Assembly: GCA_001643675.2 (NCBI GenBank)
Contig: LSRY02000001.1
Location: 992,001 to 1,056,000 of the forward strand
Origin: Monocercomonoides exilis PA203
Taxonomy: Eukaryota > Protista > Preaxostyla
Length of the DNA: 64,000 nucleotides
Direction: 5' to 3'
Shown: one piece after another, positions 19,550 to 53,886 of the stretch
Numbering within the stretch: position 1 is the stretch's first letter
Layout of the letters: the number at the start of each line of letters is the position of its first letter
The notes under the pieces: generated by a model
Database searches by the model: none
What the model saw: the letters and a program-made list of their open reading frames with translations, nothing else
Told to the model about the DNA's origin: nothing
Made by a program: the position numbers and the translations under genes

Positions 19550-20595
19550 ATGTCAACAAGTATCAACGATTCGAGAAAGGATATTGCAGATTTGAATGAT
19601 GAATTTTCTTGTGTTTCATGTTCATTTGATTGGCTCATCAATAATGCACTGAACGTTGTCAATTAAAAATGTCCGAGATGTTTGAATAAAATGTGCATTT
19701 ATTCAAGATCAGAAACAAGAAAACAATACAGATGTGCATAATGCGACAAATCGATCAGTATATTTGAAAATACTTCTTTTTTCAACTCGAAAATACCATT
19801 GAACAAACTTCTCAGAATCATTTTGCATTTTTGTTTACAATTGAATATCACTCAAACAAATTTTCTCCAAGACATCAATTGAAAAACCCTCAGTTTTTGG
19901 TATTCTCAATGTCGTGCAATTTCTTCGAAAATCATATTTCAGGATTTTCAGCCAATTGGAGGTGATGGAGAAATTGATGAAATTGTCGAGGCTATTCGAA
20001 GAAGGAGAAAATTCCACAAGGGAAGAAAAAAATCAAAGATATGGCTTTTGGAGGTATTGAAAGAAAAAGCGAAAAATGAGGAGGAAGATTTTTTATTGAA
20101 AGGGTCAAAAATAGAAAAAAAGATTCAATGCTTCCCATCATCCTTGCAAATATAAAACACAAGACAATGATTAACAGTGACGAATGGCGTGCTTATAATT
20201 GCTTATCTGAATACGATAATTCATATATATCAGAATGCCATAAATTCACTTTCAAAAATCCACTTTCTGTGGTCTGCACGAACGGAATAGAGGGATTATT
20301 GTCCAGATTTCGTCGGTTTTTGCAGAAAACATGAGTTAACAATATGTTTATTGATGACTACAATGCAAGTTACATGTTCCACTCCTCATAAAAATGCTCT
20401 TTCATAGATTTTGTGAAAAATATTCAATTTCCTGTTCCAACAGAAGAAGAAAGCGATGATAGTGATTCTAATGAATCAGAAAGTGAAGATGAATCATGGA
20501 CTCCATTAGTTGATGATCTTGTTTCATCAACTGAAAGTGACATATATGGAGCTGGCGATGGTGAATCTGCATCTGAATATGCAGAATTTTCTTGA
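19550..20595 (+). pseudogene. ISXO2/IS1595-family transposase pseudogene
   Basis: Zn ribbon CPRC..YRCA*C, IGGDGEI, TMINSDEWRAY and CTNGIEGLLSRFRR; stops and frameshifts; acidic C-terminal tail. Confidence 0.85.
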
Positions 20596-34748: not shown

Positions 34749-37700
34749 TCATCCCTCGTCAAACTTGCCTTTCGTTTCATTCACTTCAAGTTTCCATTCC
34801 TTTTCACACTCCTTGCTCTCACCGTTTTCTTCCTGCTCTTCACTGCTTTCCTCAAGAATGATTGCATCTGCCATCGTCACAACAAATGTCCCAGAAGGAA
34901 ACAGTCCAACAAGCTCTTTCTTCACTTCAGCGAGCGTTGGTCTTTTCGATGCCTCTGCTGACAGACACGCATCCACCACATTCTTCAATCCACTCTCTTC
35001 AATCCCCATCTCATCTGGCTTCTCTCCATCAACAATCTTCTTCCCCGCCACCTCTGCCTCGTATTCTCCAAATGGGATCTGGAGTGTCAGACACTCCCAC
35101 AGCATCATCCCAATCGAGAATGCCACTGACTTCTCTGTTGCACCCATCTTCTTGTTCATCACCAGCTCTGGCGCCTTCCATCGCAAACACTCTTTTTTGA
35201 AACTATCTTCATCCTCAAAGGCAGATGAGGGCAGAAAGTCATCATCATCATCGCCACCACTGGCAGATGTGACAATTGTTGATGATGAGATGGAAGAAGA
35301 GTCAGAATCATCAGATGAAAAGGAGTAGTTTGCGTTGAGGGCGATGCAGATCAACATGTGCTCTGACAAAAGCACGATGTGCGGACTCAGGTCTCGCAAA
35401 GAGGGAAGTTCGTCTTCCTCATGTTCAAGCGAGTGCAAAGCCCCATTCGCCGCCCAGAACAGCATCTGCGCTCCGGTCACCTCTCTCTCCTTTAGAGTGC
35501 CAATCGCCATTTCTTTCTTCTCATTCCTCCCATGAAGCAACATGAACAGAGAATCTCTCAAATCCACAATCAGCTTCTCATGAGGCGATGAGCAGGCCAT
35601 TGCATCCACCAGATTTGACATTGACGAGGTGGTTGGGCACAGATCCTCTCCTCGAACAAATGTTGAATCTGAATCAGTTGAGCATGTTGAAGATATTGAA
35701 GGTGAAGGAGTTCTTTTTCTTGTCTCTTCTTCTTCAACCTTCTCCAGCATCCATTCTGGAATCTTGTCTGAGTCTTTTCCCAAGATATATTCAGTGGAGC
35801 CACTCTCAGACAGCAAATGCTCCGATGACTCCGAGTGTCCCAAGCTTTTCTCATACACCCTCTTCTTGATCCTCTCCTCATTCTTCTTTTCTGCCTCCCT
35901 CTCTGCTCTCTTCCATTGTTCCTCAGGCGACATCTCCATCGTCATCATCTCAATCAGCTTCGGATCCTTCCTCACTGTGTCATTCACAATCACTTCCAGC
36001 TCTTCGGTCCTTCTCTTTTGCTTTCTCCATCGAACAGCCAGGATAATAGATACAATAAGAACAATCAACAATAAAATAACAAGCACAATCACAATCAACA
36101 ACCAATAAGATTTCCGTTCTTTTCTTCCTTCAACAAATTTTTCATCTCCATTAATCTTTGTTTCGCTTGCATTCTTCAGTATGAATGACTGTGTCGAAGA
36201 AGGAGATTCCACATAACCAAACATTAAATATACAGTCACCTCTATTTCCTCTCCACAATTGCTGAGGAGATCCTTTGCCACACTCCCTTCTGCTTCTCTT
36301 TCTGATAAAAACCCATTTGAATCAAAATCATGTTTTTCAATCTCTTTCTCTTCTCCTTTTCTCTTCACAACTGAGAATGACAGATTGCATGGAACAAGAA
36401 GCGATCCTTTGAATGTAAGCTTCATTCTATTTGTCTCTTCTTTTGTTTCCACGCTCTCCAGAACAGGAATGAAAAACGATGAATCCCTTTCTGAAACAAT
36501 TCCATCAAAACTGCACCCATCATTCAACATCCACAGTGATGAATTTGGCAAAACTCCATCTCCTCCTTTCAAACTCATCACTTTCAAAGATCCAGAATCT
36601 GAGCAAATGATATTTTTTCTCAATGATGGATACTTTTCAATGAAAGGATTATTATTCAAAAACTCTCCTTTCTCAATTATCACATTTCCTCCACTAATTG
36701 TTATTCCACCTTCTGGTGAATTGGTTATTGTTGCGTCTTTCATCATCACAGAACTCTTCACAGCATCCACAAGAGATCCAGACCATCTGCACATCTCTTC
36801 TTCTGTATTTGAATTCTTCTCATTTCTTTCCTTTGAACTCCCATCAAAAATGCAACTATCTATTTTCATATCTGTGCAATTCTCCATTTTCATCACTTTT
36901 CCTTTTGTGGTCTTTGAAGTTGTTTTCTCCATTGTGCAATTAGTCAATTGAATTGTCTTTTTCATTGACAAGCAAGATATCAATGTTTCTTCATTTCCTT
37001 CAACAGTGATATTTTCTGTATAGAAATCTTTGATTGTTAATTGTCCACATTCATTAATGCTTATCAGAGAAGTTTCTATTGTTGAATTGCAAACCGTGAA
37101 TAAATAAACCACTGATGAAAGCGGTGATGAAAGATACAAAGCTGATTCACGAAGTATTAGATTTTTCACTTTGAATTCCATAAGTTGTAATTCTCCTTTT
37201 GCCACATCAAAAATGTGAAATGGAATATTTGCAAAATTAACATTTCCTCCTTCATTCGATTGCTTTGAGTCAAATGAACAATTCATAATTTCAAGAATTC
37301 CTCCTTCTGGTGATATCAGTGATTCGTGAAAAGAGTTGAAAAACGGATCAAACACAAAGTTCACTCTCAGCAATGAAACTGATCCATCTGTTGCCACCAA
37401 AGTCTCTCTTGTTCCTTCAATCCCCGATTCCACTTCAACTTTGCACATCTCTCTGCTCTTAGAGCTCGAACTCATTTCCTTCAAATTGATCTCTTCACTA
37501 ATCACACTCTCCTCAACAATGAACATCAGACTCATGAAATCTGAAGTCAGATGCATCAGTCCATAATCAATCGAATGACATGGAAGAGCATTTGTTCCAC
37601 ATTGCCTCTCATCCGATCCATTCACACTGCTCACAATGATCGTGTCGCTCTGGTGAATCGTCACAAAATCAATCAGATCTGTATCGATTTGATGATCACA

Positions 37701-40700
37701 CTCATCTCTTCCATATATTGCGTTATCACGAATGTAATGGTCTTCTCGAAGATCAAACGGAAATTGACTTTCATTGATCTGAGATGTGATGTTGAAACAT
37801 TCAATGAAAATGTCATTTCCCACTCTAGCTGTGTTTGAACTAAATTTTATCCCCACAAATGTGAAATTCAATTCTCCTCTTTCCTTTGTTGCCAAATACA
37901 CTCCTCCTCCTCTTCCCGTGCTGTTGCTGCAGCTGCAATAGCTGATTGTTGAGTCAATTATCTTCATTGATCCAGATGCACCCAATGTGAAGAATATTAC
38001 CCCTCCTTTCTCACTTGTTTCTGCTTTGTCTTCTGTGATGTTGCTCTCATTCACAACCAAATAAATCTTTTTCTCACTCTTCAAATCCAAAATACTTGAT
38101 CCATTGTCGTTTCTCTTCACTCCTGAAAATGATGATTTCTCAATCTCTATATTTACACCTTCGTTTTCTCCATTTGTCTTCAATCCTGCTTCAGATTTCT
38201 TGACTGATAAAAAGCAAACTCTACTTTCATTCAACGACTCCACTCGAACATTTAAGAAATGGCAAGAAACTCCAGCATCGTGAATAGCAAAAATGCTATT
38301 TCCAACATTGCATGATTCAATCGACAAATCATTCACTTCTACACTGCCTCCAATCGCATTCACAAATACGCAATCAAATCCATTGTTCATTCCTGCCTCT
38401 GAATGGAATGCACATCCAGTTATCACCAAATCTCCATTTATATTTGAAATAATTGTTTTGGCTGAGTTGTCAAATCCAGATGTTAGTTGAAGTTGGATAT
38501 TCCTCAATTCAAGATGAATTTCATTCACCATGAAATGTTCCAGTTGATTTCCAACTGCCTTTTCAACATTTAATATTGCTTTCACATTCTCTTCTCCCAT
38601 CAATGAAGACTTTTTGATCTGATAATTGGATACATTGAATGAATCTCGAATAATAGTTGATCCTTCAATCTGAATTGTTTTATTTCCTTCTTCGTCTTTC
38701 ATGTTTTTCATCCCTTTCCACATCGTTTGACATGGCTCTTCCCCACTTCCACAACGTGCAACATCAAATCCAATAGAAGAAATAAATATCTCAAACGAGC
38801 TGAATGGAACGAGGAACATGAATAAATCCTTTTTTTGATGAAAATCATCACTTCCGACAAACAAATTGTTATCATCCTTCATTGATGAGTAATCAAACTT
38901 GAATGACTCATTTGTCGCAGTTGAATTAAAATTCTTACCCAAAATGAACACATTCTTTCCAATTGCAGCTTTGTTGTTCTCAAAAGTTACGTCAGCATCA
39001 AAAAGAAATGGTGTTTGATCCAAACAATTTTTGCAATCCAAATACAAGAATCCGCCTTTTCCATTGGCTGATGAAAGTGAGCAAAATGATGCATTTGTTG
39101 AATTAATAACCAGATTTTCGTCATTTTTCAATGTCACTTTTGCAACACCTCCTTCGCCACTTCCAGTGTTCGCAATATTTGTTAAGTTGTTGTTTTCAAT
39201 CAAAACAGAAGAAGCAATCACTAATGGTGATTTGACAAATGAAGACCCTTTTAAACTGCATCCATTCAATGTGCAACTTCCAGTGGTTGTTGTTATCAAC
39301 GAGTATTGAATGGCCGTTGATGATTGGAAGTCAAATAAACAGTTTACGAGATTAAGATTATTACTCGAAGAGATTAAGGAATTCATACTTGGTGTAAATT
39401 GGTTTGGAATCTGTAACTTTAAAGATAACAAGCTGAGTGGCTTAATTGATGAAATAACAGATGAAGATGATGATGCAGAATTTCCTTTGATTGTCCCTTC
39501 AAAATAAACTGTCTTGTGTTTGGCTTCATCTCCTTCATTCACACATCCATCAATCACAAGTTCATCTGAAAATGAATAAATATCTTCAATTGCCCCTTCG
39601 TCCTTCACTTTCACTTTCCTTTCTCCTTCTGTTCCACTTCTGTCAATATGATCAATTCCATTTTTCATCGATTCGCATGGGAATATCTCACTTCCACATC
39701 CCAATGTGTCATGCCCATCTTTCGACACAGATACAACCACCCACTTCAAAGAAACAAGAAACACTCGAAGATCCATTTCTCCATAAATCCCATCTTCCCC
39801 AACAAATGCATTTCCATCCTCCTCGTAATCTGAGTAACCAAACGCAAAACGCTCTATCTTCACACTGTTCACCAGATTGCTGCTCTTCACAAACATGTTC
39901 TTCCCAACTGTTGCTGAGCATCCAGAAAACGATATTGATGTGAGTTGAAATCCGACTTCATTTGAACTGCAATCCAAATATATTCCTCCTCCTTTTCCTC
40001 TCTCACTCGTATTCTCGCAAATACATCCAGTAAATGAACTGTCTTCAATTTCCACATGTCCTCCTCCCTCCAACACTATCTTTAGTGCTCCTCCTTCTTT
40101 GCTCTTCTCCGACACTGCCCCTTCTATCTTGCTTCCATTTATCACCATTCCAACTCCCACATTCCCTCCAAGCACCGCTGCCTCTCCTTCTACTGTTTCT
40201 CCATTATCAATTTCCAATCCTTCCATTGTGCAATTCAACAGTTTCACTTTGTGTTCCTGTTCATTCACATTTCCAGAAGTAAGAGAAAATGAAAATAGCG
40301 AGACAGATGATTTCACATCTGAAATCGTGACAGATTCCAGTTCAACCATCTTTCCAGTAGATATGATCAATGAAAATCCAATCGTGTTCAGTTTCCCTCC
40401 AGTCACGCACATTGCGCAGTTCTTCATGTGCAACTTACCATTTACACTACTCGATTTGATAACAGATGTGATTGTTCTGTTAAAACTCGATGGAATAACA
40501 ATCCCAATGAACTTCATTTCTGTCATCGATTCTAATTTCAGAACACACGCTTCAGATCCGCTCACTTCTCTTTTGCATTCGATACTCACAATTGCCTCAG
40601 TTCTAGCCTTGATACATATTCCACCAACATCCAAGCTCCCAGCCATAATCGAATTTGAATAAACAATAATAACTTGTTTGATGCCTTCCGTTCTCTTCAA

Positions 40701-43700
40701 ACGCCCCATCCCATAATTCACGTTCAAACAAGGCGCTTTCTCCAGCCCGCAATACACCTTTTCCACTCCAGATGTTCCATCAACATATGCCTTGTCTGCG
40801 AAGTATCCATCGAAGAATATGAATAAATCCACATCCCAATCACCAAATGCTTCTGTTCTGTCATGTCCAACAACAGAGTTGTCTTTTTCAGTGATGTTTC
40901 TCATGAAGGCGAACAAGGGCTCTTTCACAGAAGCGACAAGTGTCTCACACACACAAAACACATCTCTTCCCACACTGGCCTTGTTGGCTGAAAACACGAT
41001 ATTGGTGATGGATAAGGAGGATTCTGACACTTCTGAATCGTCGTTGTACTCGATCATGAGTGCCCCACCTTTTCCTCCAGAACTTGTATCCTCGCTCACA
41101 GAGCAGGTGGAGAAGGTTGTGTCACTCACCGAAAATGTGTTGGTAGAAGCAGATGAGGCGAATGAGATGCACCCGCCATTGGTGGCAGTCTGATGGTGTT
41201 GTGGAGCTGAGTCGATGTTGGTGATGGTGCAGTTGGGGAGGGAGATGGCGAGGGCAGGGGAGGTGGCAGAGGAGAGGACACAGCTGGTGGGAGTGGCAGT
41301 GGAGGTGATGTGGGTGATGTTGGAGGAGTTGAGGGTGAGGGGAGATGTGAAGGAGGTGAGGCGGAAGATGCTCTGGCTGTTGAGGGTGAGACTTGTGATT
41401 GCTGTGTGGTTAAGGGAGAGGGAGCCTGCAGTGATGAAGAAGAGGGGTGTGGTGATTGGTGATGAAGATGAGGTTGTTCCGGTGATGGTGGTTGTGTTGA
41501 GATTGAGGGAAGGGGAGTTACCGGAGAGGTGGAAGAGGATGGGGGTGATGGGGTTTGTGGAGTTGTGGGCGATGGCGAGGGCAGAGACTGTGAGGGAGCC
41601 CTGGGTCTGCTGGAAGAGGGCAGACGAGACAGATGGATCTGGTGAAGAAGATGTTGATATTGATGAAAATGATGATGTTGATTGTGATGACTGTGAATGT
41701 GAGTTTGATGGTTGGGGAATGCCACTGGAGGCGATGGTGGTGGCAGTTGTGCCATTTCCTGTGATTTTTGTGTCAACCGCGCTGAAAGTGAGTGTTTGAA
41801 GAGGAACAAATGTTGAGGTGAGGAGGGTGAGGGAGGCGTCGTGGAGGAGGGAAATGAAGCCGTTGAGGGCATACTCGATGGTGGCACATGGGGTCTGTTG
41901 GGGTCTGCCACAGGCATCAACATCAGTTCCGCTGTTAGAAACGATTTTATTCTGGGCAATGAGTGGGAGCCAACTGTTGAAAGTTTCATTGTCTGCTTGT
42001 CCATTATTATACACTCTTTTGGTTGGAGTTGTTGATCCACAATTCTCAAATGGAGATTGAGTGATTGTATTGCCACTGAAGAACACATCATTCCCGCTAC
42101 CATTTGTTGCGGTGTTGCCATCGAAGAAGCAGAATGTGATGAATTTATTTCCGCTCATCCAGGAACAAGTCGAACAGAAGAAAATGGCAGCGCCTCCATA
42201 TTTGACAGATGCAGTCAATTTGTTATTAATAAATTGACAATCATTTATTAAAAACAGACTTGGCTTATTGACTGGAGGATTATTGAATGTTAAAGAGCCA
42301 GCGGCATTTCCGCCAGTATTTGCGATGCACTTGCATTTAGAAAACAAGAACTGACCATTTATTGGAAAGTAATACATATTGAAATACCAGCCGGTTCCAC
42401 ACCAGTTTGTTATTGAACAACTTTCAACTTTGTTATTTGAAAATTTCCAGACAGAAAAAGATGGCGGTTGAGCTATATAAGCAGATCCACCATTTGAAGA
42501 TGAACATCTTGAAAAATTGTTTTTCGAAAAGTCAATACTGCATAGCTCATCGCAATTCAACGCTCCGCCATGATTAGAATTTGAACAATTGTTGAATGAA
42601 CAAGAGGCAATTGTGAGATTAGCATTTGAACAAGAAACAAAAAGTGCGCCACCAGACGAAGATCCACCAGTTGTATCATTCCATTCACACCATTCGAAGC
42701 GATGGCTGTTAACATCAAAAGAAGTCAATCTTCCAGGTTTCGCCCTTTGAGATTCAGATCCGACATGCACGACAGCAGCATTTGGTGAAGAGCGTGTTTG
42801 GTGGAGAAAAGAGGTGTTGAAGGCAGAGAGAGAAGTGGATGGGCTGTTGAGGTTGGGGAGAATGGCTCCATCGATGGGGTTGTGGGTGTGGAGGAAGATG
42901 GTTGAGTGGATGGAGAGGGATGAGTGAAGGGAGAAGGAGGGAATTGTATTGGAGTTTGTGTTGGTGGAAGTGGAAGAAGAGGAAGAAGAGGTTGAGATGA
43001 AAGGATTGAGCAAGTGTGAAGGAAGGGATGGAAGAGATGAATGGGAATGGGGAGAGGAGATGTTGGAGAAGAGGGTGTTTGAGAGATGGTGATTGAGGTA
43101 GATTTGGAGGTGGGGATGGGATTGGTGATGGATATGGAGAGGGGAAGGGGAAGGGGCAGAAAAAGAAGACGATGAGGATGAGGAAGATAAAGGAGAAGAG
43201 GAAAGGGATGGAGATGGAGAAGGGGAAGGGGAAGGAGATGGAGAAGGGGAAGGGGAAGAGAGGGAAGAAGGAGAAAAAAGGAAGGGCTGGATGAGGGAGA
43301 TGAAGGAGGAGAAAGAGGAGTGGGAGATGGAGAAGGAGGCAGGGATTGGGGAGTGGGCATCTGAGAGGAGATTGTTTGGGGTGGAGAAGAGAGGGAAGGA
43401 GAGGAAGGCTGGTTGGTGGGTGATGAGGGAGAAGTTTGTGAGGGCGAGGGAGGAATGAGCAGAGAGGAAAAGTGGAGATTTTGTTGCTGGTTGGGCTTGG
43501 AAAGTGAAAGAGAAAATGGAGGCAGCCGAGTGGTGTTGGGCAGTGAGGAGTGGACAACCGCTGAGAGGGACGATGTTGAGATGGGTCGCGCACAACGAGC
43601 TGTTGATGATATTCAGACTTGTTTGAATACAGCAGATGCGATTGTCAGCTGGTTTTACAACTTTCGCCAATGAATTATCTACATTATGTTTGTTATTGTC

Positions 43701-43841
43701 ATTTCCGTTTGCAATGTTGATCCTGCCTTCATGCATCTCCTTGTTCATTTCTTGTTGAATTTGCCTTTCCGCAATGCCTTCTCCATTACAGCGGTTTATA
43801 ACAAGCAACAGCAACACAAAAAATTTTATTGCAACTCTCAT
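34749..43841 (-). CDS. Giant (~3030 aa) type I membrane protein: Cys-rich beta-helix-like repeat ectodomain, TM helix, C-lobe-only pseudokinase
   Basis: Uninterrupted ORF. Signal peptide MRVAIKFFVLLLLV from ATG 43841; five CGxxxx(x)PC modules and recurrent GGA/GGG-I/V motifs; TM WLLIVIVLVILLLIVLIVSIILAV followed by RWRKQKRR; kinase remnants RWKAPE and AFSIGMMLWECLTLQIPF. Confidence 0.9.
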   Translation of the reverse strand: MRVAIKFFVLLLLVINRCNGEGIAERQIQQEMNKEMHEGRINIANGNDNNKHNVDNSLAKVVKPADNRICCIQTSLNIINSSLCATHLNIVPLSGCPLLTAQHHSAASIFSFTFQAQPATKSPLFLSAHSSLALTNFSLITHQPAFLSFPLFSTPNNLLSDAHSPIPASFSISHSSFSSFISLIQPFLFSPSSLSSPSPSPSPSPSPSPSPSLSSSPLSSSSSSSSFSAPSPSPLHIHHQSHPHLQIYLNHHLSNTLFSNISSPHSHSSLPSLPSHLLNPFISTSSSSSSTSTNTNSNTIPSFSLHSSLSIHSTIFLHTHNPIDGAILPNLNSPSTSLSAFNTSFLHQTRSSPNAAVVHVGSESQRAKPGRLTSFDVNSHRFEWCEWNDTTGGSSSGGALFVSCSNANLTIASCSFNNCSNSNHGGALNCDELCSIDFSKNNFSRCSSSNGGSAYIAQPPSFSVWKFSNNKVESCSITNWCGTGWYFNMYYFPINGQFLFSKCKCIANTGGNAAGSLTFNNPPVNKPSLFLINDCQFINNKLTASVKYGGAAIFFCSTCSWMSGNKFITFCFFDGNTATNGSGNDVFFSGNTITQSPFENCGSTTPTKRVYNNGQADNETFNSWLPLIAQNKIVSNSGTDVDACGRPQQTPCATIEYALNGFISLLHDASLTLLTSTFVPLQTLTFSAVDTKITGNGTTATTIASSGIPQPSNSHSQSSQSTSSFSSISTSSSPDPSVSSALFQQTQGSLTVSALAIAHNSTNPITPILFHLSGNSPSLNLNTTTITGTTSSSSPITTPLFFITAGSLSLNHTAITSLTLNSQSIFRLTSFTSPLTLNSSNITHITSTATPTSCVLSSATSPALAISLPNCTITNIDSAPQHHQTATNGGCISFASSASTNTFSVSDTTFSTCSVSEDTSSGGKGGALMIEYNDDSEVSESSLSITNIVFSANKASVGRDVFCVCETLVASVKEPLFAFMRNITEKDNSVVGHDRTEAFGDWDVDLFIFFDGYFADKAYVDGTSGVEKVYCGLEKAPCLNVNYGMGRLKRTEGIKQVIIVYSNSIMAGSLDVGGICIKARTEAIVSIECKREVSGSEACVLKLESMTEMKFIGIVIPSSFNRTITSVIKSSSVNGKLHMKNCAMCVTGGKLNTIGFSLIISTGKMVELESVTISDVKSSVSLFSFSLTSGNVNEQEHKVKLLNCTMEGLEIDNGETVEGEAAVLGGNVGVGMVINGSKIEGAVSEKSKEGGALKIVLEGGGHVEIEDSSFTGCICENTSERGKGGGIYLDCSSNEVGFQLTSISFSGCSATVGKNMFVKSSNLVNSVKIERFAFGYSDYEEDGNAFVGEDGIYGEMDLRVFLVSLKWVVVSVSKDGHDTLGCGSEIFPCESMKNGIDHIDRSGTEGERKVKVKDEGAIEDIYSFSDELVIDGCVNEGDEAKHKTVYFEGTIKGNSASSSSSVISSIKPLSLLSLKLQIPNQFTPSMNSLISSSNNLNLVNCLFDFQSSTAIQYSLITTTTGSCTLNGCSLKGSSFVKSPLVIASSVLIENNNLTNIANTGSGEGGVAKVTLKNDENLVINSTNASFCSLSSANGKGGFLYLDCKNCLDQTPFLFDADVTFENNKAAIGKNVFILGKNFNSTATNESFKFDYSSMKDDNNLFVGSDDFHQKKDLFMFLVPFSSFEIFISSIGFDVARCGSGEEPCQTMWKGMKNMKDEEGNKTIQIEGSTIIRDSFNVSNYQIKKSSLMGEENVKAILNVEKAVGNQLEHFMVNEIHLELRNIQLQLTSGFDNSAKTIISNINGDLVITGCAFHSEAGMNNGFDCVFVNAIGGSVEVNDLSIESCNVGNSIFAIHDAGVSCHFLNVRVESLNESRVCFLSVKKSEAGLKTNGENEGVNIEIEKSSFSGVKRNDNGSSILDLKSEKKIYLVVNESNITEDKAETSEKGGVIFFTLGASGSMKIIDSTISYCSCSNSTGRGGGVYLATKERGELNFTFVGIKFSSNTARVGNDIFIECFNITSQINESQFPFDLREDHYIRDNAIYGRDECDHQIDTDLIDFVTIHQSDTIIVSSVNGSDERQCGTNALPCHSIDYGLMHLTSDFMSLMFIVEESVISEEINLKEMSSSSKSREMCKVEVESGIEGTRETLVATDGSVSLLRVNFVFDPFFNSFHESLISPEGGILEIMNCSFDSKQSNEGGNVNFANIPFHIFDVAKGELQLMEFKVKNLILRESALYLSSPLSSVVYLFTVCNSTIETSLISINECGQLTIKDFYTENITVEGNEETLISCLSMKKTIQLTNCTMEKTTSKTTKGKVMKMENCTDMKIDSCIFDGSSKERNEKNSNTEEEMCRWSGSLVDAVKSSVMMKDATITNSPEGGITISGGNVIIEKGEFLNNNPFIEKYPSLRKNIICSDSGSLKVMSLKGGDGVLPNSSLWMLNDGCSFDGIVSERDSSFFIPVLESVETKEETNRMKLTFKGSLLVPCNLSFSVVKRKGEEKEIEKHDFDSNGFLSEREAEGSVAKDLLSNCGEEIEVTVYLMFGYVESPSSTQSFILKNASETKINGDEKFVEGRKERKSYWLLIVIVLVILLLIVLIVSIILAVRWRKQKRRTEELEVIVNDTVRKDPKLIEMMTMEMSPEEQWKRAEREAEKKNEERIKKRVYEKSLGHSESSEHLLSESGSTEYILGKDSDKIPEWMLEKVEEEETRKRTPSPSISSTCSTDSDSTFVRGEDLCPTTSSMSNLVDAMACSSPHEKLIVDLRDSLFMLLHGRNEKKEMAIGTLKEREVTGAQMLFWAANGALHSLEHEEDELPSLRDLSPHIVLLSEHMLICIALNANYSFSSDDSDSSSISSSTIVTSASGGDDDDDFLPSSAFEDEDSFKKECLRWKAPELVMNKKMGATEKSVAFSIGMMLWECLTLQIPFGEYEAEVAGKKIVDGEKPDEMGIEESGLKNVVDACLSAEASKRPTLAEVKKELVGLFPSGTFVVTMADAIILEESSEEQEENGESKECEKEWKLEVNETKGKFDEG
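38177..38707. repeat. 531-bp segment duplicated in inverted orientation at 46819-47349
   Basis: The peptide NMKDEEGNKTIQ...KKSEAGLK is identical in both ORFs except G/E at CNVxNS; one nucleotide difference seen by eye. Confidence 0.95.
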
Positions 43842-44915
43842 AACGTAAGAGCGTCTTATCACAGATGTGGATCCTGGGAAAATGTGGAAATAAAATATTC
43901 CTGCGCCCCATATTATATTGATGAATATCTGAATAAGATCAATTTGATAATTACTCTTCAAAAGATGTCTTTCAATCACATTAAATAATTAAAAGGCAAA
44001 ACTGTCATTCAATTTTGTTTTATTTTGATATCAATAACAACAACATTAGCATTTGATTCTTTTGTTTAATGATGAACAATCATTCGAATTTGACATTAAC
44101 GATAAATAGCTGAGAACTGTAAATTCAGAATTTTTTTTCAAAACAATCAAGATGTAATTTCAATTTCAAGGGGAAAAAAATATCAACAAAAAAAACGACA
44201 ACTACTAGGTTTTCAAAAGATTATAATTACTAAAATAAAATTCTTGCATTGTTAAGAATTATATCAAACAAACAATAAAAAAGATTGCTTTCATATCTTT
44301 TTCTTGTATTTATTTTGTTTCAACAAACGAAAACATATCATGCTTTATGAAAATGTTTTTGTTTTTTTAATACCCAATTAAAAAATTATTGAACAAAAAA
44401 ACAGAAAGAAGTTTCGAATAGAAAATTTTTTTACAAACTTAATGTTGTTGCTGTTTTAACGTGCTTCAATTATTAGAAATATTCTTCCTGTTACAATATA
44501 AATTAAGTTTTCTTCTGTTGATTCAAACAGAAACAAATAAACAATATTGTTATTTAAAAATGAACAACGCGTTGTTGAGAGATAACAAGAAAATTTTAGA
44601 AAAAATATCAGTCTCTATAAGAAAAGTTCAATAAATATTTTATTATTTTCAAATCAACTTTTTGTATACATTTTCACAAGTTAAATAAAAATGTGTATTT
44701 TTTTATCTGTGCAACATAAACACATTCACAAAAAATTTTAATAATCAAACAGTTTTCACACTTGACATCATAATAATAATTCTTTTTATTTAACTAATAG
44801 AAAGAGATATTTTTTCAAAATATTCGAAGCATGAATAAAATTGAATTGAATGTTTCATTGTTTTTATTCAATAAAATGGGTTATTCTTTTTGTGAAGTCT
44901 CAAAAATAAAATATA

Positions 44916-45157
44916 TATCTAAATTTTTTTGAAAAGTTCCTTTTGTTTAATTTTCAATCAAAATAAAAATTTCATATTTCTATCAAACATCTGTTCCCAC
45001 TCACCAAATTTCACTGTGATGGTTATAATTGAATTGTTCAGGTTTTATTTCCTTTTGAGAGAAATTTCGTGAGTGGGAACAGAAATTTGATGAAATTATG
45101 AAATTTTTATTTTAATAGAAAATAAAACAAAAGGAACTTTTCATAAAAATATTGACA
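44916..45157. mobile_element. MITE family 1, copy D
   Basis: TA|TATCTAAATTTTTTTGAAAAGTTCC...GGAACTTTTCATAAAAATATTGACA|TA with internal CTGTTCCCACTCAC / GTGAGTGGGAACAG inverse pair. Confidence 0.88.
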
Positions 45158-46802
45158 TATAGGTTTTGTAAAAAAACAGATCATTTCCTGAATATTTTTT
45201 TTCCTTCAAGTCCTTCATGTTTCTCCTCAACGAAAAAATATATAAACAACACATGGGGGAAAATATGAACTTTCAAGCTTTTTATGCACTAAGCATGAAA
45301 ATATTGTTTCTCTTATTACATTATTACACTTTACCAGATTTCAAAATAAATTTGATTTTTATTACTCTAAACAAACATCATTGAAATAATAACAAAATGT
45401 TTTGTGACATCACATGTATTTCTAAAAATGAACCCATTTATTTCAAATCTTATATTCACAAAAAGTCAATGAAAAGTGCATAATTTTTCTTCGAAAATGC
45501 TTGAAGTCAAATATTTTGTCCCACATGTGTAAAATTGCACAAATTCTTCATTACGGATTAATAAGACGGATTATTATTGTAAATTTTCCAAAAAATGACG
45601 AAGCAAATAATATACAAAAATTAAACATTTTCGGCTTTTTAAAAAGGATTACACGCTTATATTGATCAAATTACTGTTAATACTTGTGTGTTTCAACAAG
45701 AACGGAAAACAATTCTTTGACAACGTCATTATTTCCATACAAAATATATGGTGAGAGGGCATAGGTCTAGATGCGCTTTTTTTGCAAATTGCGTTTTTAG
45801 GCATTAAAATTATGATGAATAAATAGGTAATAATTATTATAAAACTTTTTATGGACCGATTTTTCGAAAAAAATTTATTTTGTTGAAAAAAATGATTTTT
45901 GAAAAATGACCCATAAAAACATGAATTTCATTAAATAATATTCAAATATTAAAGAAAACGTGATTTTTGGACATCCAATGTGTTTGCATTATTATATAGA
46001 CATATTTTATTTGTTAATTTTCATCAAAAAAATATAAATCATAAACAAAAAATTTAATTAAACATCTTTGATCTAACCCACAATAAAATTAGTTTTCTTT
46101 AGAAAAATTGAATATGGGATAAAATTTTTGCATTTATGAAAGAAACAACGATATGTTCCAAACATTTTCTCCAACCTAATCATTATAAGTCTTTCATTCC
46201 CATTTCAAAAAAATACAGAAAAATACTAAAATTAAGAAAAATATTTGTTTGAGTAGAATGGAACAAAATTCATAAAGCAAAATATTTCGTCCCATATGCT
46301 GTTTTGGCTTAAATAGAACTCAATAGTTTGCCATAGTTTCATTTTTATATATAAAATTAAAGTATATTGTTATATGCGCACTTGTTTTGTGTTGAAAACA
46401 GCTTTTTTTCACAGTTGCATTAAAGTGTGCCTTTTTGCTTGAATATTCTAAAACTACCTAATATTAGTCATTTTCGTTCGCAAAGGAACGCAAAAGGTTA
46501 TAAATGACTCTTTAAATAACAATATTATTTATTTTGCTTTAAATTTTCATATATTTTCTTGTTCTTTTATATTTCTATGTTTTTTTTGAATTAGATAAGA
46601 TCATTGCATTATTAAATGAAACTTTTTACCCAGATAAACTTCAATTTCCCAATGAAATATTATATTGAGTTATAAAAACAATGGACTTTATTAAAGTTTG
46701 TCGTTTGTGTGTTTTTAAAAATACAAAGAATGAGATTGATTTAGCTTTTCTAGTGGATCTGATGTTGAGAGCTGGAGATGTGAGGATGAGCTATGCCAAA
46801 CA

Positions 46803-49800
46803 ATGCGGAAGCGGATGGAAAACATGAAAGACGAAGAAGGAAATAAAACAATTCAGATTGAAGGATCAACTATTATTCGAGATTCATTCAATGTATCCAA
46901 TTATCAGATCAAAAAGTCTTCATTGATGGGAGAAGAGAATGTGAAAGCAATATTAAATGTTGAAAAGGCAGTTGGAAATCAACTGGAACATTTCATGGTG
47001 AATGAAATTCATCTTGAATTGAGGAATATCCAACTTCAACTAACATCTGGATTTGACAACTCAGCCAAAACAATTATTTCAAATATAAATGGAGATTTGG
47101 TGATAACTGGATGTGCATTCCATTCAGAGGCAGGAATGAACAATGGATTTGATTGCGTATTTGTGAATGCGATTGGAGGCAGTGTAGAAGTGAATGATTT
47201 GTCGATTGAATCATGCAATGTTGAAAATAGCATTTTTGCTATTCACGATGCTGGAGTTTCTTGCCATTTCTTAAATGTTCGAGTGGAGTCGTTGAATGAA
47301 AGTAGAGTTTGCTTTTTATCAGTCAAGAAATCTGAAGCAGGATTGAAGATTAATGAAGGAGAACTGATTGTGGATGGATTAATGATGGAAATTGCAGCGA
47401 CACTGACGATGAATGGGAAGCCGCCAATATCGATGACAAGCGGAGTGAAATTGGACATCAAGAACAGCAGAGTGAGTGGAGTGACGGTGGAAGACGGGAG
47501 CGGAGAAGGAAGAGGTTGCATTGGTGCTGCGATAAAAGAAGGAGGAAGCGCAGTTGTGGATAACTGCAGCATTTCAACAACATGCACAGGTGGAAGTGGG
47601 ATGAAAGGAGGAGGGATGATGATTTCAGTTGAGAACGGAGGAAGTTTGGAGATTAAAAGCGCAACATTCACAGGATGCCAGGTGCCAACAGAGGACAGCT
47701 TGCAGAAAGGAAGAGGAATGGGAGGAGGGATGTTTGTGAGTTTGGCAGATACAATGGGATCATTTAAGATGGAAGGAGTGACATTCAGCGAGTACAATGC
47801 CTGGAAAGGGAAGAAAGTGTTCATATCGGGAAATGAGCTGGACGAGGCTATGTCAAACGAACAACTGAAATGGGGGTTGAGTGCAAGTGATGAGAATTCA
47901 TTGGATAAGTTGTGTGGATGGGAGAAGAAGACTACAGGAGAAAATGGATATGTAATTCCACTTGTTGTGTATTTGTGGTTCAATTGGAGCAGGAATGGGT
48001 TTGTATCGAAGGAGAAAGGAGGAGACTTCAGCGGGTGTGGGTTTTCTGAAGCACCATGCTCATCGATTGATCACTTGACATCACTTCGATATCCAACGCT
48101 TGGAGGAGGGGAAACACATATTGCCATTGTGGAATCAGGATTGTTAATCCATCCGATATCATTCTTGTCTTCATTGCTAAATTTGCCAGATTCAGAGGTG
48201 CCAGCAGTTGTGATAAAAGGAACAAAGAAAGGGACAGGAGTGACGATCAGTGATGAAGATGAGAATGATCCAAAAGATTCAATGATATTATCTGATGTGA
48301 GTTTATCGATTGTAAACATGACATTCACAAAACCAGTCGCGAAAACTAATCATGCAGTATTCATTGAATCGTCAGGAACAAATGCATTCTTGACAGTCAC
48401 GGACTGCTCATTTGGATCAACTGGCGGGACTGTTGAAAGTTTTGGGTGTTGCCTGATAAAAGTGAATGGAGGCAGAGTTATTGCTCAAGAGTGTTTGTTG
48501 GATGCGGTTGACAAATTGAAAGAGTTCATCGCTTTCAGTGCAACAGCAACAAGAGAGGTGATTGTGGAGGATGTGAACATCTCGAATGTTGGGGTGAAGG
48601 AGAGAAGTCTGATATCGATGTTTGAGGATGAACAGATGAATGGGATGAAAGCCAAAAAAGGGATAAATGGAGGGGGAAATGGGAATTCAAACAACAAAAA
48701 AGTGGTGGTAAAAGTGAATGGCTCTTCGTTTTCATTCATCACAAATGGAGAAAACAGAGCAGGGGTGTTGAGTGTGGATTCATTTGCGAGGGCAATGGAG
48801 TGTGTGTTGGAGGGGTGTTCAATCTCGAGTTGCAGGAATGAAATGAGCGAGGAAGAAGGAGAAATGAAAGTGTGTCTGAAGAGAGGAGAATCAGAAGTGA
48901 GAGTTGTTGGGTGTTCGCTGGGGATGTGTTCGTGCTATGGGGTGAAGGGAAGAGGAGGAGGGATGATGGTTGAAGCATTTGACCCGAATGGGGGTGGAGC
49001 CAGTGCACTTGGGCCTGTTGGGATAAGGATGGAGAATGTGAGGTTTTGGGGGAACGAGGTGTTTGTGGAGAAGGATGTGTTCATCAAGTGCCACTCGATT
49101 GGGAAACAGATCAATAAAACGATGTTTGTGCTGGACTTCGAGCGGGATGCACTGAAGGGGAAGAACTCGATGTGTGGGAGCGATGGAGAAGGGAAAGTTG
49201 ATGTTGATTTGATTCCGTTGATCACATTCTTTCACTCAGCTCAGGTGTTTGTGAGTGTAAATGAAAATGATAGCAGACGGTGTGGAGCACAGAATTATCC
49301 GTGCCAGAGCATAAGTTGTGGTTATAAACATATTGAGAGAAGCGTTGCAAATATGATTTTAATTCATGGAGAATGCATGATTTGTGGATGGTGTGAGATA
49401 GGAGATTTGAATGTGAAGTCGGTGAAGAAGGCAAAATCCACAATCCATTTTGAGGGGAAGATGGGGGACAGAGGAGAGGAGAGGAGCATGATGGTGTTTG
49501 TGAATGAGTGTGTTGTGGAGAGGTGCAAGTTTGTGTTTGGAGACCCATTTGAAGGGGTTGAAGAGAGTGTGGGAAAAGATCTCATCAGTAGTCGCGAAAA
49601 TGACATCGAGGCGAGCGTGTTAATTTTATTTGGGAATGCAGAATTTCCTTCTTCAGCACAGCCATTTGTTCTGAAGAATACAAGTGAAACAAAGGGAAAT
49701 GGAAATGAAATAATGTCAAAAGGAGAGGATAAATTTGAATGGAGTTTATTTGCCTTTATTGAATGTATTGTGATTGGTGTGATTCTGTTGTTTGTGATTG

Positions 49801-49955
49801 TTGCGGTAGTTGTGCTAATGAGAAAGAAATTAAGGGAAGCAGAAAAGAGAGTTGAGAAAGAAAGATTTGAAAACGAGCAGATAATGGGAAAGATAGAGAA
49901 GAGAAGAAGGAAGAAAATTTTGAGAATATCTCAGTGCATATTGAAGGAAGCGTGA
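46803..49955 (+). CDS. Chimeric, 5'-truncated paralogue of the giant surface-protein family (1050-aa ORF with TM; no signal peptide, no kinase tail)
   Basis: Starts mid-module. aa ~6-182 equal the 34749-43841 gene; these are followed by a divergent ectodomain with two CGxxxxPC modules, then an abrupt jump to the juxtamembrane/TM module (SVG|KDLISS). Expression unknown. Confidence 0.7.
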   Translation: MRKRMENMKDEEGNKTIQIEGSTIIRDSFNVSNYQIKKSSLMGEENVKAILNVEKAVGNQLEHFMVNEIHLELRNIQLQLTSGFDNSAKTIISNINGDLVITGCAFHSEAGMNNGFDCVFVNAIGGSVEVNDLSIESCNVENSIFAIHDAGVSCHFLNVRVESLNESRVCFLSVKKSEAGLKINEGELIVDGLMMEIAATLTMNGKPPISMTSGVKLDIKNSRVSGVTVEDGSGEGRGCIGAAIKEGGSAVVDNCSISTTCTGGSGMKGGGMMISVENGGSLEIKSATFTGCQVPTEDSLQKGRGMGGGMFVSLADTMGSFKMEGVTFSEYNAWKGKKVFISGNELDEAMSNEQLKWGLSASDENSLDKLCGWEKKTTGENGYVIPLVVYLWFNWSRNGFVSKEKGGDFSGCGFSEAPCSSIDHLTSLRYPTLGGGETHIAIVESGLLIHPISFLSSLLNLPDSEVPAVVIKGTKKGTGVTISDEDENDPKDSMILSDVSLSIVNMTFTKPVAKTNHAVFIESSGTNAFLTVTDCSFGSTGGTVESFGCCLIKVNGGRVIAQECLLDAVDKLKEFIAFSATATREVIVEDVNISNVGVKERSLISMFEDEQMNGMKAKKGINGGGNGNSNNKKVVVKVNGSSFSFITNGENRAGVLSVDSFARAMECVLEGCSISSCRNEMSEEEGEMKVCLKRGESEVRVVGCSLGMCSCYGVKGRGGGMMVEAFDPNGGGASALGPVGIRMENVRFWGNEVFVEKDVFIKCHSIGKQINKTMFVLDFERDALKGKNSMCGSDGEGKVDVDLIPLITFFHSAQVFVSVNENDSRRCGAQNYPCQSISCGYKHIERSVANMILIHGECMICGWCEIGDLNVKSVKKAKSTIHFEGKMGDRGEERSMMVFVNECVVERCKFVFGDPFEGVEESVGKDLISSRENDIEASVLILFGNAEFPSSAQPFVLKNTSETKGNGNEIMSKGEDKFEWSLFAFIECIVIGVILLFVIVAVVVLMRKKLREAEKRVEKERFENEQIMGKIEKRRRKKILRISQCILKEA

Positions 49956-50039
49956 TGAAGATGGATGGAGCTGAAAGGGGGTTGTGTGTGCTGAACTGTT
50001 CCTTTGTGAAATGCCGTAGCACGAACAAGAGAGGAAGGA

Positions 50040-50305
50040 TGATAAGGATATGTTAGTGCGTGGATGTGCTGATTGGATCGTATATGTTTGATGGAGAGGA
50101 AGGAGATGAAAAAGAAGGAAAGCATGAAAATGACGATAATGGAAGAGACGAAGAGATATGCAGATGGGATGAATCTCTTGTGGATATCTTTAACAGTTCT
50201 GTTTTGATGAAAGATTTTGCAATCTCTAATTCACATGAAAAAGGAATAACAATGAGGGGAGGAAATGTGTGGATGAAAGCAAAAACATTTTTCAATAATT
50301 ATTAG
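50040..50305 (+). pseudogene. Out-of-order ectodomain fragment of the same family
   Basis: EEICRWDESLVDIFNSSVLMKDFAISNSHEKGITMRGGNV aligns with EEMCRWSGSLVDAVKSSVMMKDATITNSPEGGITISGGNV, which lies upstream of the TM in the full-length gene. Confidence 0.85.
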
Positions 50306-51396
50306 GACTTTTTCACTTTATTGCAACAATAATTTTGAAATTTTCTTGTTGTTCACATAAAATTGTAAATGTTTTTGTTTGTGTAAAGGAAATACATCTT
50401 TATTTGTATCTTTGCAATTATTGTTTGATGTTTATAAAACAATTTTAAGAATGAAATGAATATATTATTTGTGAAAAAGATATGATCTTTATAATTTCTA
50501 AAGCAGTTTCAATATTTTTCAATCAATTATTTATTCACTTTGCTTGCAAATTATAATTATTCTACAACATATTTTTGTCATCATCCGTGACACTAGGATC
50601 AAGAAAACAAAGAACAAATTCAAAAATAACTTTTCAATGAATGAAATATAAACATTTCTAAACGACTGATTAATTAAAAACTTCTTTGCTGAAACATACT
50701 GTAATAATTCCTTTCTTTTTGTTTTAATCATGCAGAGTTCAAAAATGAAAGATAAAAAAATGAAAGAATATGTCAGTTTTTCAAAGTTTCAATTAAATTG
50801 AACAATTTTTATCCAGTCAGAGTTTAAACAAAACTTTTTCAATACATTGCCATCTTTATTGAAATGAATATCCAGTTGCTTCTTAATAATAAAGTGCATT
50901 TCAAAAAGTTTTCTTGACTAAGGAATGAAAGCATTACATAACATTAAACATTCACAAGCGTAATTACATTCAAATAAATAAACACGAAAGTGTTCGATTT
51001 TCAAACTTTTAGGTTCTATTTAAACCAAAACAATATATTCAATTTTCCAGATATTAAAAAATTTATTGTGGGTTAGATCAAAGATGTTTAATTAAATTTT
51101 TTGTTTATGATTTATATTTTTTTGATGAAAATTAACAAATAAAATATGTCTATATAATAATGCAAACACATTGGATGTCCAAAAATCACGTTTTCTTTAA
51201 TATTTGAATATTATTTAATGAAATTCATGTTTTTATGGGTCATTTTTCAAAAATCATTTTTTTCAACAAAATAAATTTTTTTCGAAAAATCGGTCCATAA
51301 AAAGTTTTATAATAATTATTACCTATTTATTCATCATAATTTTAATGCCTAAAAACGCAATTTGCAAAAGGAGCGCATTTTGACCTATGCCGAAAG

Positions 51397-53886
51397 TTAT
51401 CGAACAGAATCTGCGTCAAGTTCAATAGAATATAGTGAAGTTAACGACAACAATGAAAAAGACGGGAAAATCGAAGAGATAATGTGAGGCACGCAAGGAG
51501 AAGAGTGTAGTTGTGTAGATTCTGAAACTTTTGAAGCCGTTGCAGAAGCAAATGCTGCTTCAGATGCAGAGGCATAAATGATAGAAGAAGAAGAAGAAGA
51601 AGATAATTCGAAGATACAAAACATTGAGAATGTGAGGAGACATTTATTTGGAAAAATATGATTTCATATAAGAAAATGAATCGAAAGAAGGAAAATGAGA
51701 AAATGAAGAAAAAAGAAAAAAGGAAAAAAGAAAGAAGATAGAAGAAGATAGAAGAAGAGAAAGAAGAAAAGGAGGAGGACGAGGAAGAAGCAGTAAAAGA
51801 GTTATCCAAAATAGAATAGCCAAAGATCCCTCACACTCACGCGCCAGTGTGGAGCGCGAGTTTGTCGAGAAAGAGCTCCGCAGACGAGTCAAAGTTCCAT
51901 TTCCAGTTGCAGTTCCAGTTGCATATGCATTTGCAGTGGCTGTTGTGTCTGTGCCTTCTGGAATAACACCAACATCAACATCAATGCCAGTGCTAATGCC
52001 AGGCGGAGGAGTGAAAGAGAGAGGGATATCATTAACTGTGCACAAGCGGGAGCGGTTCAGGCTTATGTTCGCACTCGGATAAAAGCAATTATCTGAAGTT
52101 AACTATCGACCTCTTTCTCTTTCTCTCTCTTGCTCCTTCTTTGGTTAATTCCTTATTTTCTTCATCGCACTTTTCAGTAACAGCACCTGTCAGAACATTA
52201 TCTGAAAGAGAATCTGCAATAGGAACTGTGTCTGAACTGACAGTTAATGCTCCCTGTGTCTGCCTCGCTACTCCACTCAGCCCTATTAGCCCAGCAATAC
52301 CGGCAAGCGACGGGTTGAAGGAAGAGGCATCTGTATGCACCGAATGTATTGAATGCACTGAATGCACAGAATCCAGAGAAGATGCCAGTGTGTTTGGCGA
52401 AGATGAGGACAACGGATGAGGCAGAGAAGCGCTCAGAGAAAGGGACAAGGAGGAAGGAGCGATGGGGATAGAAGAGCTGTGCAGAGGCTGCAGATGCTGC
52501 GTTGCTTTATTATATGATGCCAAAAGGGATGAAGAAATCGGAGGTTTTTCAATCGGGTCAGAGAAGACGAGGGAAGGTGGGTTTGGCCCATCGCCCATAG
52601 CGTCCTGCAAAGAGAGCAGATCAGTCTCAGTGAATGCGCTGTGGTGTGCAGCTGTCCCTCTTTCCTTCTTCACCGAGTCAAACAAGGAGGCAGAGAAAGA
52701 GCGGGGCTTAGAGAGTGATAGTGAAGGGAACGGGAGAATGAGGTCGGAAGGTCTGATGGCTGAGGAGTTGGCAGAGAAAGTGCCAGCGCTGCTGCTGTTG
52801 ACGTGTGTGAAGGCGCTGAGGGAGGAGCAGCGGGGAGAGGAGAAGGATAGAGGGTCAAAAGAGTCAGGAAGAGCTCCTTCGGAGAAGTTGTTCCTGGAGC
52901 TGTCTAGAGAGGAGAAAGAATAAGGGAGCATGGGGGAGAGAGGTAATTATTATTGTTATTATTCCTGAAATTATTATTGTTGTAATTATTATTAATACCA
53001 ATGATGCTTTCATTGAGTTTATTGCTGTTGTCCCTGGTGAGTGAGAACAGATCATCAGCTGCCTCTTCCCCAACAGAATATGTCACTGACTGATGCTTAT
53101 TCAAATACTCTCTGTCTTCTTTTTCTTCTTCTTCTTCATTCAACGAGCGATTTGTCACCGATCCTACAATGTTTATCTCTGAGGCAATGGCTGTTGACAT
53201 ACCAACTCCATTGTCTATGCTATTCTCTATTCCATTTCCTATCCCATTTCCTGTGCCACTGATTGTGCCTATTCCAGAGAGAGACAAAGAAAGCGAGTGC
53301 GAGCGGGGCTTCGAGCCGTCCATGATGGAGCGGCGGGAGGAGTGGAAGGAGCGGAGCGAGGCGTAGCGGGAGGAAGACAAAGAGAACATTTCGTCTTCAT
53401 CTATCGCGGGGGCAAGTTGATGATGATGATGATGACGACGAGGGGATTTCTGGAGTGAGGTTGTGTCATTGTCATTGTCATCATTGGTATTATTATTATT
53501 ATTATTATCTTCATCATCGTCATTATTATTGTTGTTGTTGTTGTTTGACTGGCTGAAACAGCACGCACCGCTGCTCCTGAAAAGGAGGAGAAAGAGGAAG
53601 AGAAAGGAAATGAAGAAAAAAAAGAAGATGAAGAAGATGAGGAAGAAGAGGACAACAACGAAGAAGAAGATAACCCCACAACAATATGTCTTCTGGAAAA
53701 TGTGTCTGAGGCTAGGCGATGAGATAGCACGTCAATAGACATTCCACGAGGTGCTTCAAGTGCTGTCTTGATGTCTGTCTGAACTGAGTTCTTCCGGTCA
53801 ATTTGACAGAAAATGGCATCTTCTTCTTCCTCTTCTTCTTCTTCTTCTTTTTCTTTTTCTGTTAGTAACATGCTTTTCTCTCGCAC
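51397..53886 (-). pseudogene. Low-complexity (Ser/Asn/Glu-rich) uncharacterised coding-like region broken into several frames
   Basis: Consecutive minus-strand ORFs 53401-53886, 52904-53389, 52089-52931 and 51644-52045 are joined only by frameshifts or stops; no recognisable domain. Confidence 0.4.

Follow-up and report, generated by a model that had tools for sequence, protein, structure and literature searches.

A probable non-autonomous Merlin element with a chimeric reading frame derived from giant receptor kinases of Monocercomonoides exilis

Transposons of the Merlin superfamily generate target site duplications (TSDs) of 8 or 9 bp and have terminal inverted repeats (TIRs) of 24–462 bp (PMC8101967, citing Feschotte 2004). 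Monocercomonoides sp. PA203 is reported to have at least seven Merlin families, with more than 100 copies in all, TIRs of 23–29 bp and a transposase as their only product (PMC8101967). The genome of M. exilis is unusually rich in repeats (46%, with 35% of the assembly unclassified), and an overlap of the unclassified ones with the protein tyrosine kinase family was noted but left unexplained by the authors (PMC8767320). Here we describe the element at positions 45758–51391 of a 64,000-nt stretch of M. exilis PA203 DNA (C1:992001–1056000; hereafter the window, whose positions are given without a contig prefix), which was compared with the 82.3-Mb, 101-contig assembly. As assembled, it is very probably a 5.6-kb non-autonomous Merlin element that carries a chimeric, host-derived open reading frame (ORF), referred to as ORF1. 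The host sequences belong to giant transmembrane (TM) receptor kinases of about 2,400–4,400 amino acids (aa), which correspond to the tyrosine kinase-like (TKL) 'protein tyrosine kinases', a family that has ~330 genes and is the largest in M. exilis. A mobile ectodomain gene of this kinase family, found at some dozen loci or more and exchanging sequence with the host copies, would provide a concrete mechanism for the overlap between repeats and kinase genes.

The element family shares with the Merlin superfamily an IS1595/IS1016-type DDE transposase with an N-terminal, Zn-ribbon-like CxxC...CxxC motif, an 8-bp TSD and TIRs beginning with 5′-GG. It differs from the Merlins reported from Monocercomonoides, with their 23–29-bp TIRs, in having inverted arms of 0.35–7.2 kb and a second, host-derived ORF, and in giving rise to foldback-like 1.74-kb derivatives and to non-autonomous copies that carry ORF1 alone. 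While the arms of the window copy (358–405 bp) fall within the 24–462-bp range for the superfamily, those of other copies, ~0.87, 4 and 7.2 kb in length, lie beyond it and show that Merlin elements may have multi-kb arms. Neither a long-arm Merlin family nor a second ORF of this kind is mentioned in the literature that we searched, including PMC8101967.

The Pack-TYPE transposons of plants, which include Pack-MULE (from Mutator-like elements, MULEs), Pack-CACTA, Pack-hAT, Pack-PIF and Pack-Mariner (PMC8903248), offer a second comparison. Like these, the window copy is a non-autonomous class II TIR element without a transposase, in which transduplicated host fragments (B-type, A-type and TM-region sequences, described below) are joined in a chimeric ORF, and its relatives carry varied fragment sets; a TSD is absent at this copy. 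It differs from them in its superfamily, Merlin, and in its host, an oxymonad protist. Furthermore, autonomous copies share its main cargo, which is ancestral, whereas plant cargo is usually described as acquired by the non-autonomous lineage and missing from the autonomous partner. The cargo of the element comes from one huge gene family and has been rewritten continually by gene conversion instead of being assembled from unrelated genes. With it, gene-carrying 'Pack' behavior would come to include the Merlin superfamily as well as a protist host. Kaonashi MULEs are autonomous transposons that bear a transduplicated fragment of a ULP1-like protease. As in the Kaonashi elements, the transposase is accompanied by an ORF of host origin that persists across subfamilies; unlike theirs, ORF1 lies within the inverted arms, is present twice per element and recombines with the more than 300 members of its family. 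The palindromic 1.74-kb copies and the 99.8–100% identity of the long-copy arms over 4–7 kb also recall foldback-type elements, from which the family is distinguished by its Merlin-type transposase, its 8-bp TSD and the lack of tandem subrepeats in the arms, in which no direct repeats were found.

Ends, copies and transposase of the element family

A repeat search of 44–53 kb returned one large inverted pair, 45758–46106 and 51043–51391, the 349-nt arms of which are 97% complementary and separated by 4936 nt. When both element ends were compared by BLAST, the match extended to 358 nt (96.4% identity), and the arm homology reaches ~405 bp once a miniature inverted-repeat transposable element (MITE) nested in the left arm is discounted. 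The original prediction, made from the letters of the window, had described long, near-perfect inverted repeats around ~5 kb free of transposase, and this description holds, with arms of 349–358 bp at 96–97% identity enclosing ~4.9 kb; 45758–51391 gave no tblastn match to the family transposase. The element termini read GGCATAGG...CCTATGCC; GGCATAGG was found at both ends of all copies of the family, and the termini start with 5′-GG.

Elsewhere in the genome, the 349-bp arm gave 40 scored matches (out of 158 candidates) at 86–100% identity, nearly all of them as facing pairs. Counts of the terminal pattern GGCATAGGNNNARAYNCG were 31 in forward and 30 in reverse orientation, versus 0 and 1 for a control, so that chance does not account for the repeat, and these occurrences form 28 proper inverted pairs with a spacing of 1.7–20.4 kb, three or four ends being solo; a copy on contig C15 with a mutated right end constitutes a 29th pair. 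The arms proposed in the original prediction are therefore not confined to unpaired, dispersed ends, and fragments of the giant family are found between such ends at other loci as well. Flanks were read for 22 pairs, and perfect 8-bp TSDs were present at 15 of these, with one further pair matching at 7/8 and one at 6/8 positions. The four pairs without a TSD are the window copy, C1:847013, C1:2186537 and C16:997450, three of them on contig C1.

The copies take several forms. Those of 1.74 kb are complete palindromes of the first ~870 bp, lack ORF1 and have perfect TSDs. The ~5.4-kb form, which includes the window copy, consists of a TIR, ORF1, a 1-kb tail and the second TIR, without a transposase gene. 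Because all five other ~5.4-kb members with independent insertion sites have perfect TSDs, this transposase-less, ORF1-carrying form must have been mobilized repeatedly. Element positions 4145–5634 of the window copy are 68–73% identical to copies on C1, C6, C44, C48 (the copy designated C48b) and C49, and the equivalent of 46294–46730 belongs to the extended inverted arm of both short and long relatives and is palindromic in the 1.74-kb copies. Mid-size relatives (3–4.3 kb) hold other, rearranged sets of giant-gene fragments.

The transposase of the family was found in a 10.8-kb copy, C13:173742–184510, which has the same termini and a perfect TSD, CGAATATT, and the left end of which was confirmed by the pattern search. 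At its center lies an intact 485-aa ORF with a DDE_Tnp_IS1595 domain (PF12762, E = 1.7e-21) and, upstream of this domain, the CxxC...CxxC motif. It is the only intact transposase of the family, and each arm of the same copy contains one ORF1. Damaged, related transposases are present in a 10.6-kb copy on C16 and in both arms of a 20.4-kb copy on the same contig. On sequence criteria the family is assigned to the Merlin superfamily because it combines an IS1595-type DDE domain with an 8-bp TSD and 5′-GG termini (PMC8101967). The original prediction had named both Mutator and Merlin as families with ends of this kind and had asked for an autonomous partner with the same ends; the C13 copy supplies that partner and upholds the Merlin half of the naming. 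The Mutator half must be abandoned, Mutator and Pack-MULE elements, with their 9–11-bp TSDs and MURA-type transposase, being excluded by the 8-bp TSD and the IS1595-type transposase.

The 20.4-kb copy, C16:997450–1017897, is a composite. Its 7,171-bp arms are 99.8% identical, each containing ORF1 and a family transposase interrupted by stop codons, and they enclose a 6.1-kb center with a second transposase (PF12762, E = 1e-17) and a kinase-domain fragment. This central transposase was rejected as the family's own since it belongs to a different Merlin subfamily, with 52–57% aa identity. A TIR-like piece inside the arms had suggested a simple ancestor in the order TIR, ORF1, transposase, TIR, an arrangement that was dismissed because the piece is in direct orientation. 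Polinton/Maverick elements are marked by pPolB, integrase and capsid genes and a 6-bp TSD. The 20-kb copy was rejected as an element of that kind, as Pfam searches of its ORFs returned only DDE_Tnp_IS1595 and the kinase fragment and the TSD of the family is 8 bp.

Other observations on the family concern single copies. C15:401585–409699 (8.1 kb) has family ends around a ~6.4-kb interior without ORF1, transposase or Pfam match. C1:817245–822642 and C1:847013–852408 lie 30 kb apart in opposite orientation and have identical ORF1 cores, one with a perfect TSD and the other with none. At C49:550012–554300 the 14-bp flanks, tgaaagatctctga and tcagagatctttca, are exact reverse complements, which points to a palindrome that continues beyond the element, as in a foldback duplication rather than a TSD. 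Genome-wide, Merlin/IS1595-type transposases are very abundant, with 147 of 724 candidates scored; open frames of 300–670 aa are common among them, and they form several identity classes and outnumber the 'over 100 copies' counted in an older assembly.

ORF1 as a chimera and a mosaic

ORF1 is an uninterrupted frame of 1050 aa, as originally predicted, and the four pieces of the giant family that had been recognized in the cargo were all recovered: a B-type module, an ectodomain core (aa 181–917), a juxtamembrane/TM module and an ectodomain piece beyond it (Table 1). We use B-type for the giant gene adjacent to the element and its paralogues of the same type, and A-type for a second class, divided into A1 and A2; a kinase domain was identified in the B-type neighbor (PK_Tyr_Ser-Thr, E = 7e-9), and an A-type member on C70 is collinear with this neighbor at 35% identity over their full lengths (A 3–2342 = B 792–3042). 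ORF1 residues 1–185 plus 72 bp upstream are equivalent to B residues 1730–1937. Residues 181–917, which share 57–66% protein identity with host genes of ~3000 aa, are the A-type equivalent of B ~1550–2213, and these correspondences make the B/A join at 47358 non-collinear. The cargo is thus not a collinear copy of one ordinary paralogue. ORF1 gave no Pfam match, and its predicted core structure is of low confidence (predicted local distance difference test score, pLDDT, 58), with weak matches to parallel beta-helix proteins (PL6 lyase, pertactin). The exact 1050-aa sequence is present in NCBI, UniRef and EukProt, and the representative of its 90% cluster, MONOS_9772, is the annotation of the sibling copy on C48; both have been deposited as ordinary proteins, and both lie within transposons.

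The 3′ part of ORF1 distinguishes the window subfamily. The other three element lineages match the window copy up to 49569 and again from 49900, and the best host matches of the intervening sequence, at 66–71% aa identity, are the TM regions of other giants. We infer that in this subfamily 259 bp of the ancestral ORF1 gave way to a 330-bp juxtamembrane/TM module. As the exchange added 71 bp, it shifted the frame; ORF1 stops 18 codons further on, at 49955, and the old 3′ end lies out of frame. This stranded end, 49958–50305 (KMDGAERGLCVLNCSF...RIC*), has its match at the C-termini of two other ORF1 versions, the 1072-aa one of the 20-kb copy on C16 and the longer one on C13, and it is 38% identical to residues 2340–2443 of the neighbor. 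Replacement followed by a frame shift would explain the ectodomain piece that the original prediction had found placed after the TM segment.

The same chimera occurs in other copies. C48:548002–553454 repeats the full architecture at 89% identity and has a perfect TSD, CAGTCACG. In C16:1369301–1379912 (10.6 kb) the interior of the window element is present twice, in inverted orientation, with arms that are 100% identical over ~4 kb, and the 20.4-kb copy on C16 has one open ORF1 per arm, of 1072 and 1063 aa, in arms 99.8% identical over their 7,171 bp. In general, ORF1 lies inside the inverted arms of transposase-bearing copies, which hence possess two copies of it per element. More distant interior matches between the same ends were found at C1:817245, C1:847013, C6:333118, C44:429987, C48:540175, on C13 and at C16:997450. 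ORF1 has been retained in all examined copies of ~5 kb or more except the 8.1-kb copy on C15. Most ORF1 copies contain 1–8 stop codons or frameshifts, and three are intact, namely that of the window copy and those of both 20-kb arms. The extent of the B-homology, from 38793/6 down to 38168 or 38328 of the neighbor gene, is common to all element lineages at 80–83% identity, from which it follows that the B-type capture predates the split of the family. Because the transposase-bearing copies on C13 and C16 carry the same ORF1, the cargo was not captured by the non-autonomous lineage, and on this distribution the ORF1 chimera is ancestral to the family and not an acquisition of the window copy. 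The proposal of Pack-type capture and fusion is accordingly retained in part: host fragments from different subfamilies have been fused in non-collinear order, but the window copy is not where the capture took place.

ORF1 is also a mosaic. When the window, C48 and C16 copies are compared in 150-bp windows, identity switches between 96–100% and 67–80%; over the 5′ two-thirds of ORF1 each pair shows a pattern of its own, and the 3′ third is uniformly 93–100% identical. Such conversion tracts were detected as sliding-window identity on an alignment and were missed by megablast at ≥93%. The 628-bp tract 46731–47358 is 95.7% identical to positions 38168–38793 of the adjacent gene, 7 kb away, as against 80–83% between that gene and the other element copies. 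Since more than 150 B-type paralogues carry this tract, at 73–85% aa identity, it is native to the gene and the window element is the recipient; the reverse, an insertion from the element into the neighbor, was ruled out on the same grounds. Immediately downstream, 149 of the 153 positions in 47358–47510 are identical to an A2-type giant on C62, and 326–327 of the 335 in 47431–47765 (~97%) to A2-type giants on C14 and C8. These values exceed those for sibling elements, which are 61–96% across 47358–48437. The stretch 48438–49037 is 87–95% identical to A1-type genes, and 48438–49569 is 87–95% identical to sequences on C70, C50, C58 and C12 and 92–100% to sibling elements. In a tree of ORF1 cores and 15 host segments, element copies fell into three fully supported clades among the host clades, and monophyly of the element cores was rejected (difference in log likelihood, delta lnL, 175; approximately unbiased test, p-AU, 1.3e-18), although for mosaic sequences a single tree represents an average. 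As judged from these alignments, ORF1 is a gene-conversion mosaic, and the change specific to the window copy is later conversion from host paralogues and not capture.

Passenger, module shuttle or local rearrangement

We propose that the ~5.4-kb form arose by a deletion that kept ORF1 and removed the transposase gene, and that the window copy would have been moved in trans by the transposase of the family. Because ORF1 is still homologous to hundreds of host paralogues, it would have been overwritten repeatedly by ectopic gene conversion: after the exchange that introduced the TM module into the subfamily, the N-terminal module of the window copy would have been rewritten by the adjacent gene and the next 0.4–0.6 kb by A2-type genes. 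ORF1 is most likely a passenger, encoding a protein that the element does not need; its youth and its conversion by intact genes would have preserved the open frame. Several observations weigh against this account of a transposed element with a dispensable cargo. As the original prediction had itself cautioned, the window copy lacks a TSD (GGTGAGAG vs GAAAGTTA), nor is a displaced one present within 400 bp, so that its own arrival by transposition is deduced from its siblings. The direction of the A2 and A1 tracts is read from the many host genes that share the sequence, with 15 host segments sampled. Furthermore, the ratio of nonsynonymous to synonymous substitutions (dN/dS) of element ORF1 pairs, at 0.35–0.48, is clearly below 1, which could reflect selection on ORF1 instead of imported host divergence.

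A more far-reaching reading makes the Merlin family not just a recipient but a two-way shuttle, in which ORF1 takes up modules from adjoining paralogues, as at this locus, carries them to new chromosomes and donates them there to other paralogues by gene conversion, thereby shuffling TKL modules, and in which some intact, TM-anchored copies are expressed as truncated receptors. We consider this unlikely, and the related proposal that ORF1 is functional or domesticated, as a truncated decoy or a membrane-anchored beta-helix protein within a mobile reservoir subject to conversion in both directions, decidedly unlikely. Beyond the dN/dS values, such a function would fit the retention of ORF1 in the larger copies and in both arms of those that bear transposase, its intactness in the window copy and in both 20-kb arms, the gain of a TM module in the window subfamily and the demonstrated conversion with host genes. 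However, no N-terminal signal peptide was predicted in ORF1 and the ancestral form has no TM segment; the frame is broken in most copies, and the 1.7-kb copies transpose without it. In the sole tract for which direction can be judged, the element was the recipient. The low dN/dS is equally well explained by tracts from host genes under selection, among which the ratio is 0.23–0.38, and imported tracts alone can suffice to produce it. Altogether, a function of ORF1 or a part in two-way module exchange is unlikely, and the role in antigenic variation that had been suggested for the cargo finds no support in an ORF that lacks a signal peptide and contains stop codons in most copies.

The missing TSD of the window copy also allows a reading in which no mobile unit exists at this locus, and in which the inverted pair stems from a local rearrangement, from recombination of two different element copies or from an error in the assembly of a repeat-rich contig of Oxford Nanopore Technologies (ONT) reads. 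The clustering of three of the four TSD-less pairs on contig C1, the mutually reverse-complementary flanks at C49:550012 and the tendency of the family to form palindromes are in keeping with such an origin, which we nevertheless regard as very unlikely. The two arms of the window copy are 96–97% identical to each other and at most 90% identical to any other copy, and the C48 copy repeats the full architecture at 89% with a perfect TSD. Neither an inversion nor a crossover partner for the flanks of the window copy was found among the other C1 copies. These flanks contain other repeats, and they matched no empty-site paralogue, the ~200 bp on each side being otherwise unmatched among the matches scored. 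For a transposed Merlin copy, it is plausible that the TSD was lost by rearrangement after insertion, or that transposition employed ends from different copies.

Finally, a fresh capture of the Pack-MULE type, by which a Mutator element would have taken up four host fragments through gap repair, independently of an autonomous partner, accounts for the non-autonomous structure, the TIRs and the non-collinear fragments of the window element and for the other assortments of giant fragments in mid-size relatives, but it is highly unlikely and largely refuted by the 8-bp TSD, by an IS1595/Merlin-type rather than MURA transposase, and by the presence of the same chimeric ORF1 and B-junction in the transposase-bearing copies and in all ORF1-bearing subfamilies, the TM module alone being subfamily-specific.

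Features of the locus and its surroundings

The features of the element and the adjacent giant gene are compiled in Table 1.

Table 1. Coordinates in the window of the element, its parts and the neighboring gene
Feature	Position	Strand	Remarks
Left terminal inverted repeat	45758–46115	+	Starts GGCATAGGTC; 86–90% to ~40 scored copies across the genome
Nested MITE splitting the left arm	46111–46298		~185 bp; short GGGA...TCCC inverted ends
Subterminal region specific to the element	46294–46730	+	94% to the 10.6-kb copy on C16
N-terminal B-type module	46731–47358	+	Corresponds to neighbor residues 1730–1937
ORF1	46803–49955	+	1050 aa, uninterrupted; chimera of giant-family modules
Ectodomain core, first part	47358–48437	+	Probable recent conversion tracts from A2-type host paralogues
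Ectodomain core, second part	48438–49569	+	A1-like to ~49037, then element-subfamily-specific
Juxtamembrane/TM module	49570–49899	+	Predicted TM helix 49749–49820, aa 983–1006
Stranded ancestral ORF1 3′ end (ectodomain piece after TM)	49958–50305	+	Other frame
Non-coding tail	50306–50986		Common to other ~5.4-kb transposase-less copies (alignment)
Right terminal inverted repeat	50987–51391	−	Ends GACCTATGCC
Adjacent B-type giant receptor-kinase gene	34749–43979	−	3076 aa, C-terminal kinase domain

The nested MITE is present in the window copy only, all other copies of the element family skipping from element position 359 to 537. Its own family has at least 40 genomic copies (691 candidates) with identities of up to 97%, which suggests that it was recently active. 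Farther from the element, tblastn with the family transposase gave a weak, transposase-like match at 19667–20101 (20% identity, E = 0.001), possibly a relic of a different DDE element.

The ORFs of a low-copy repeat in the right flank, 51583–52900, gave no Pfam match; four other copies of this repeat, at 83–87% identity, are located on C49, C20, C47 and C6, and a ~120-bp unit inside it recurs on many contigs in tandem-like clusters. In the left flank, 44912–45161 is a palindromic dispersed repeat of ~250 bp with 117-nt arms at 83% identity, and 45246–45530 contains a second dispersed repeat with a unit of ~280 bp. Both are probably MITEs, dozens of copies having been scored at 76–87% identity.

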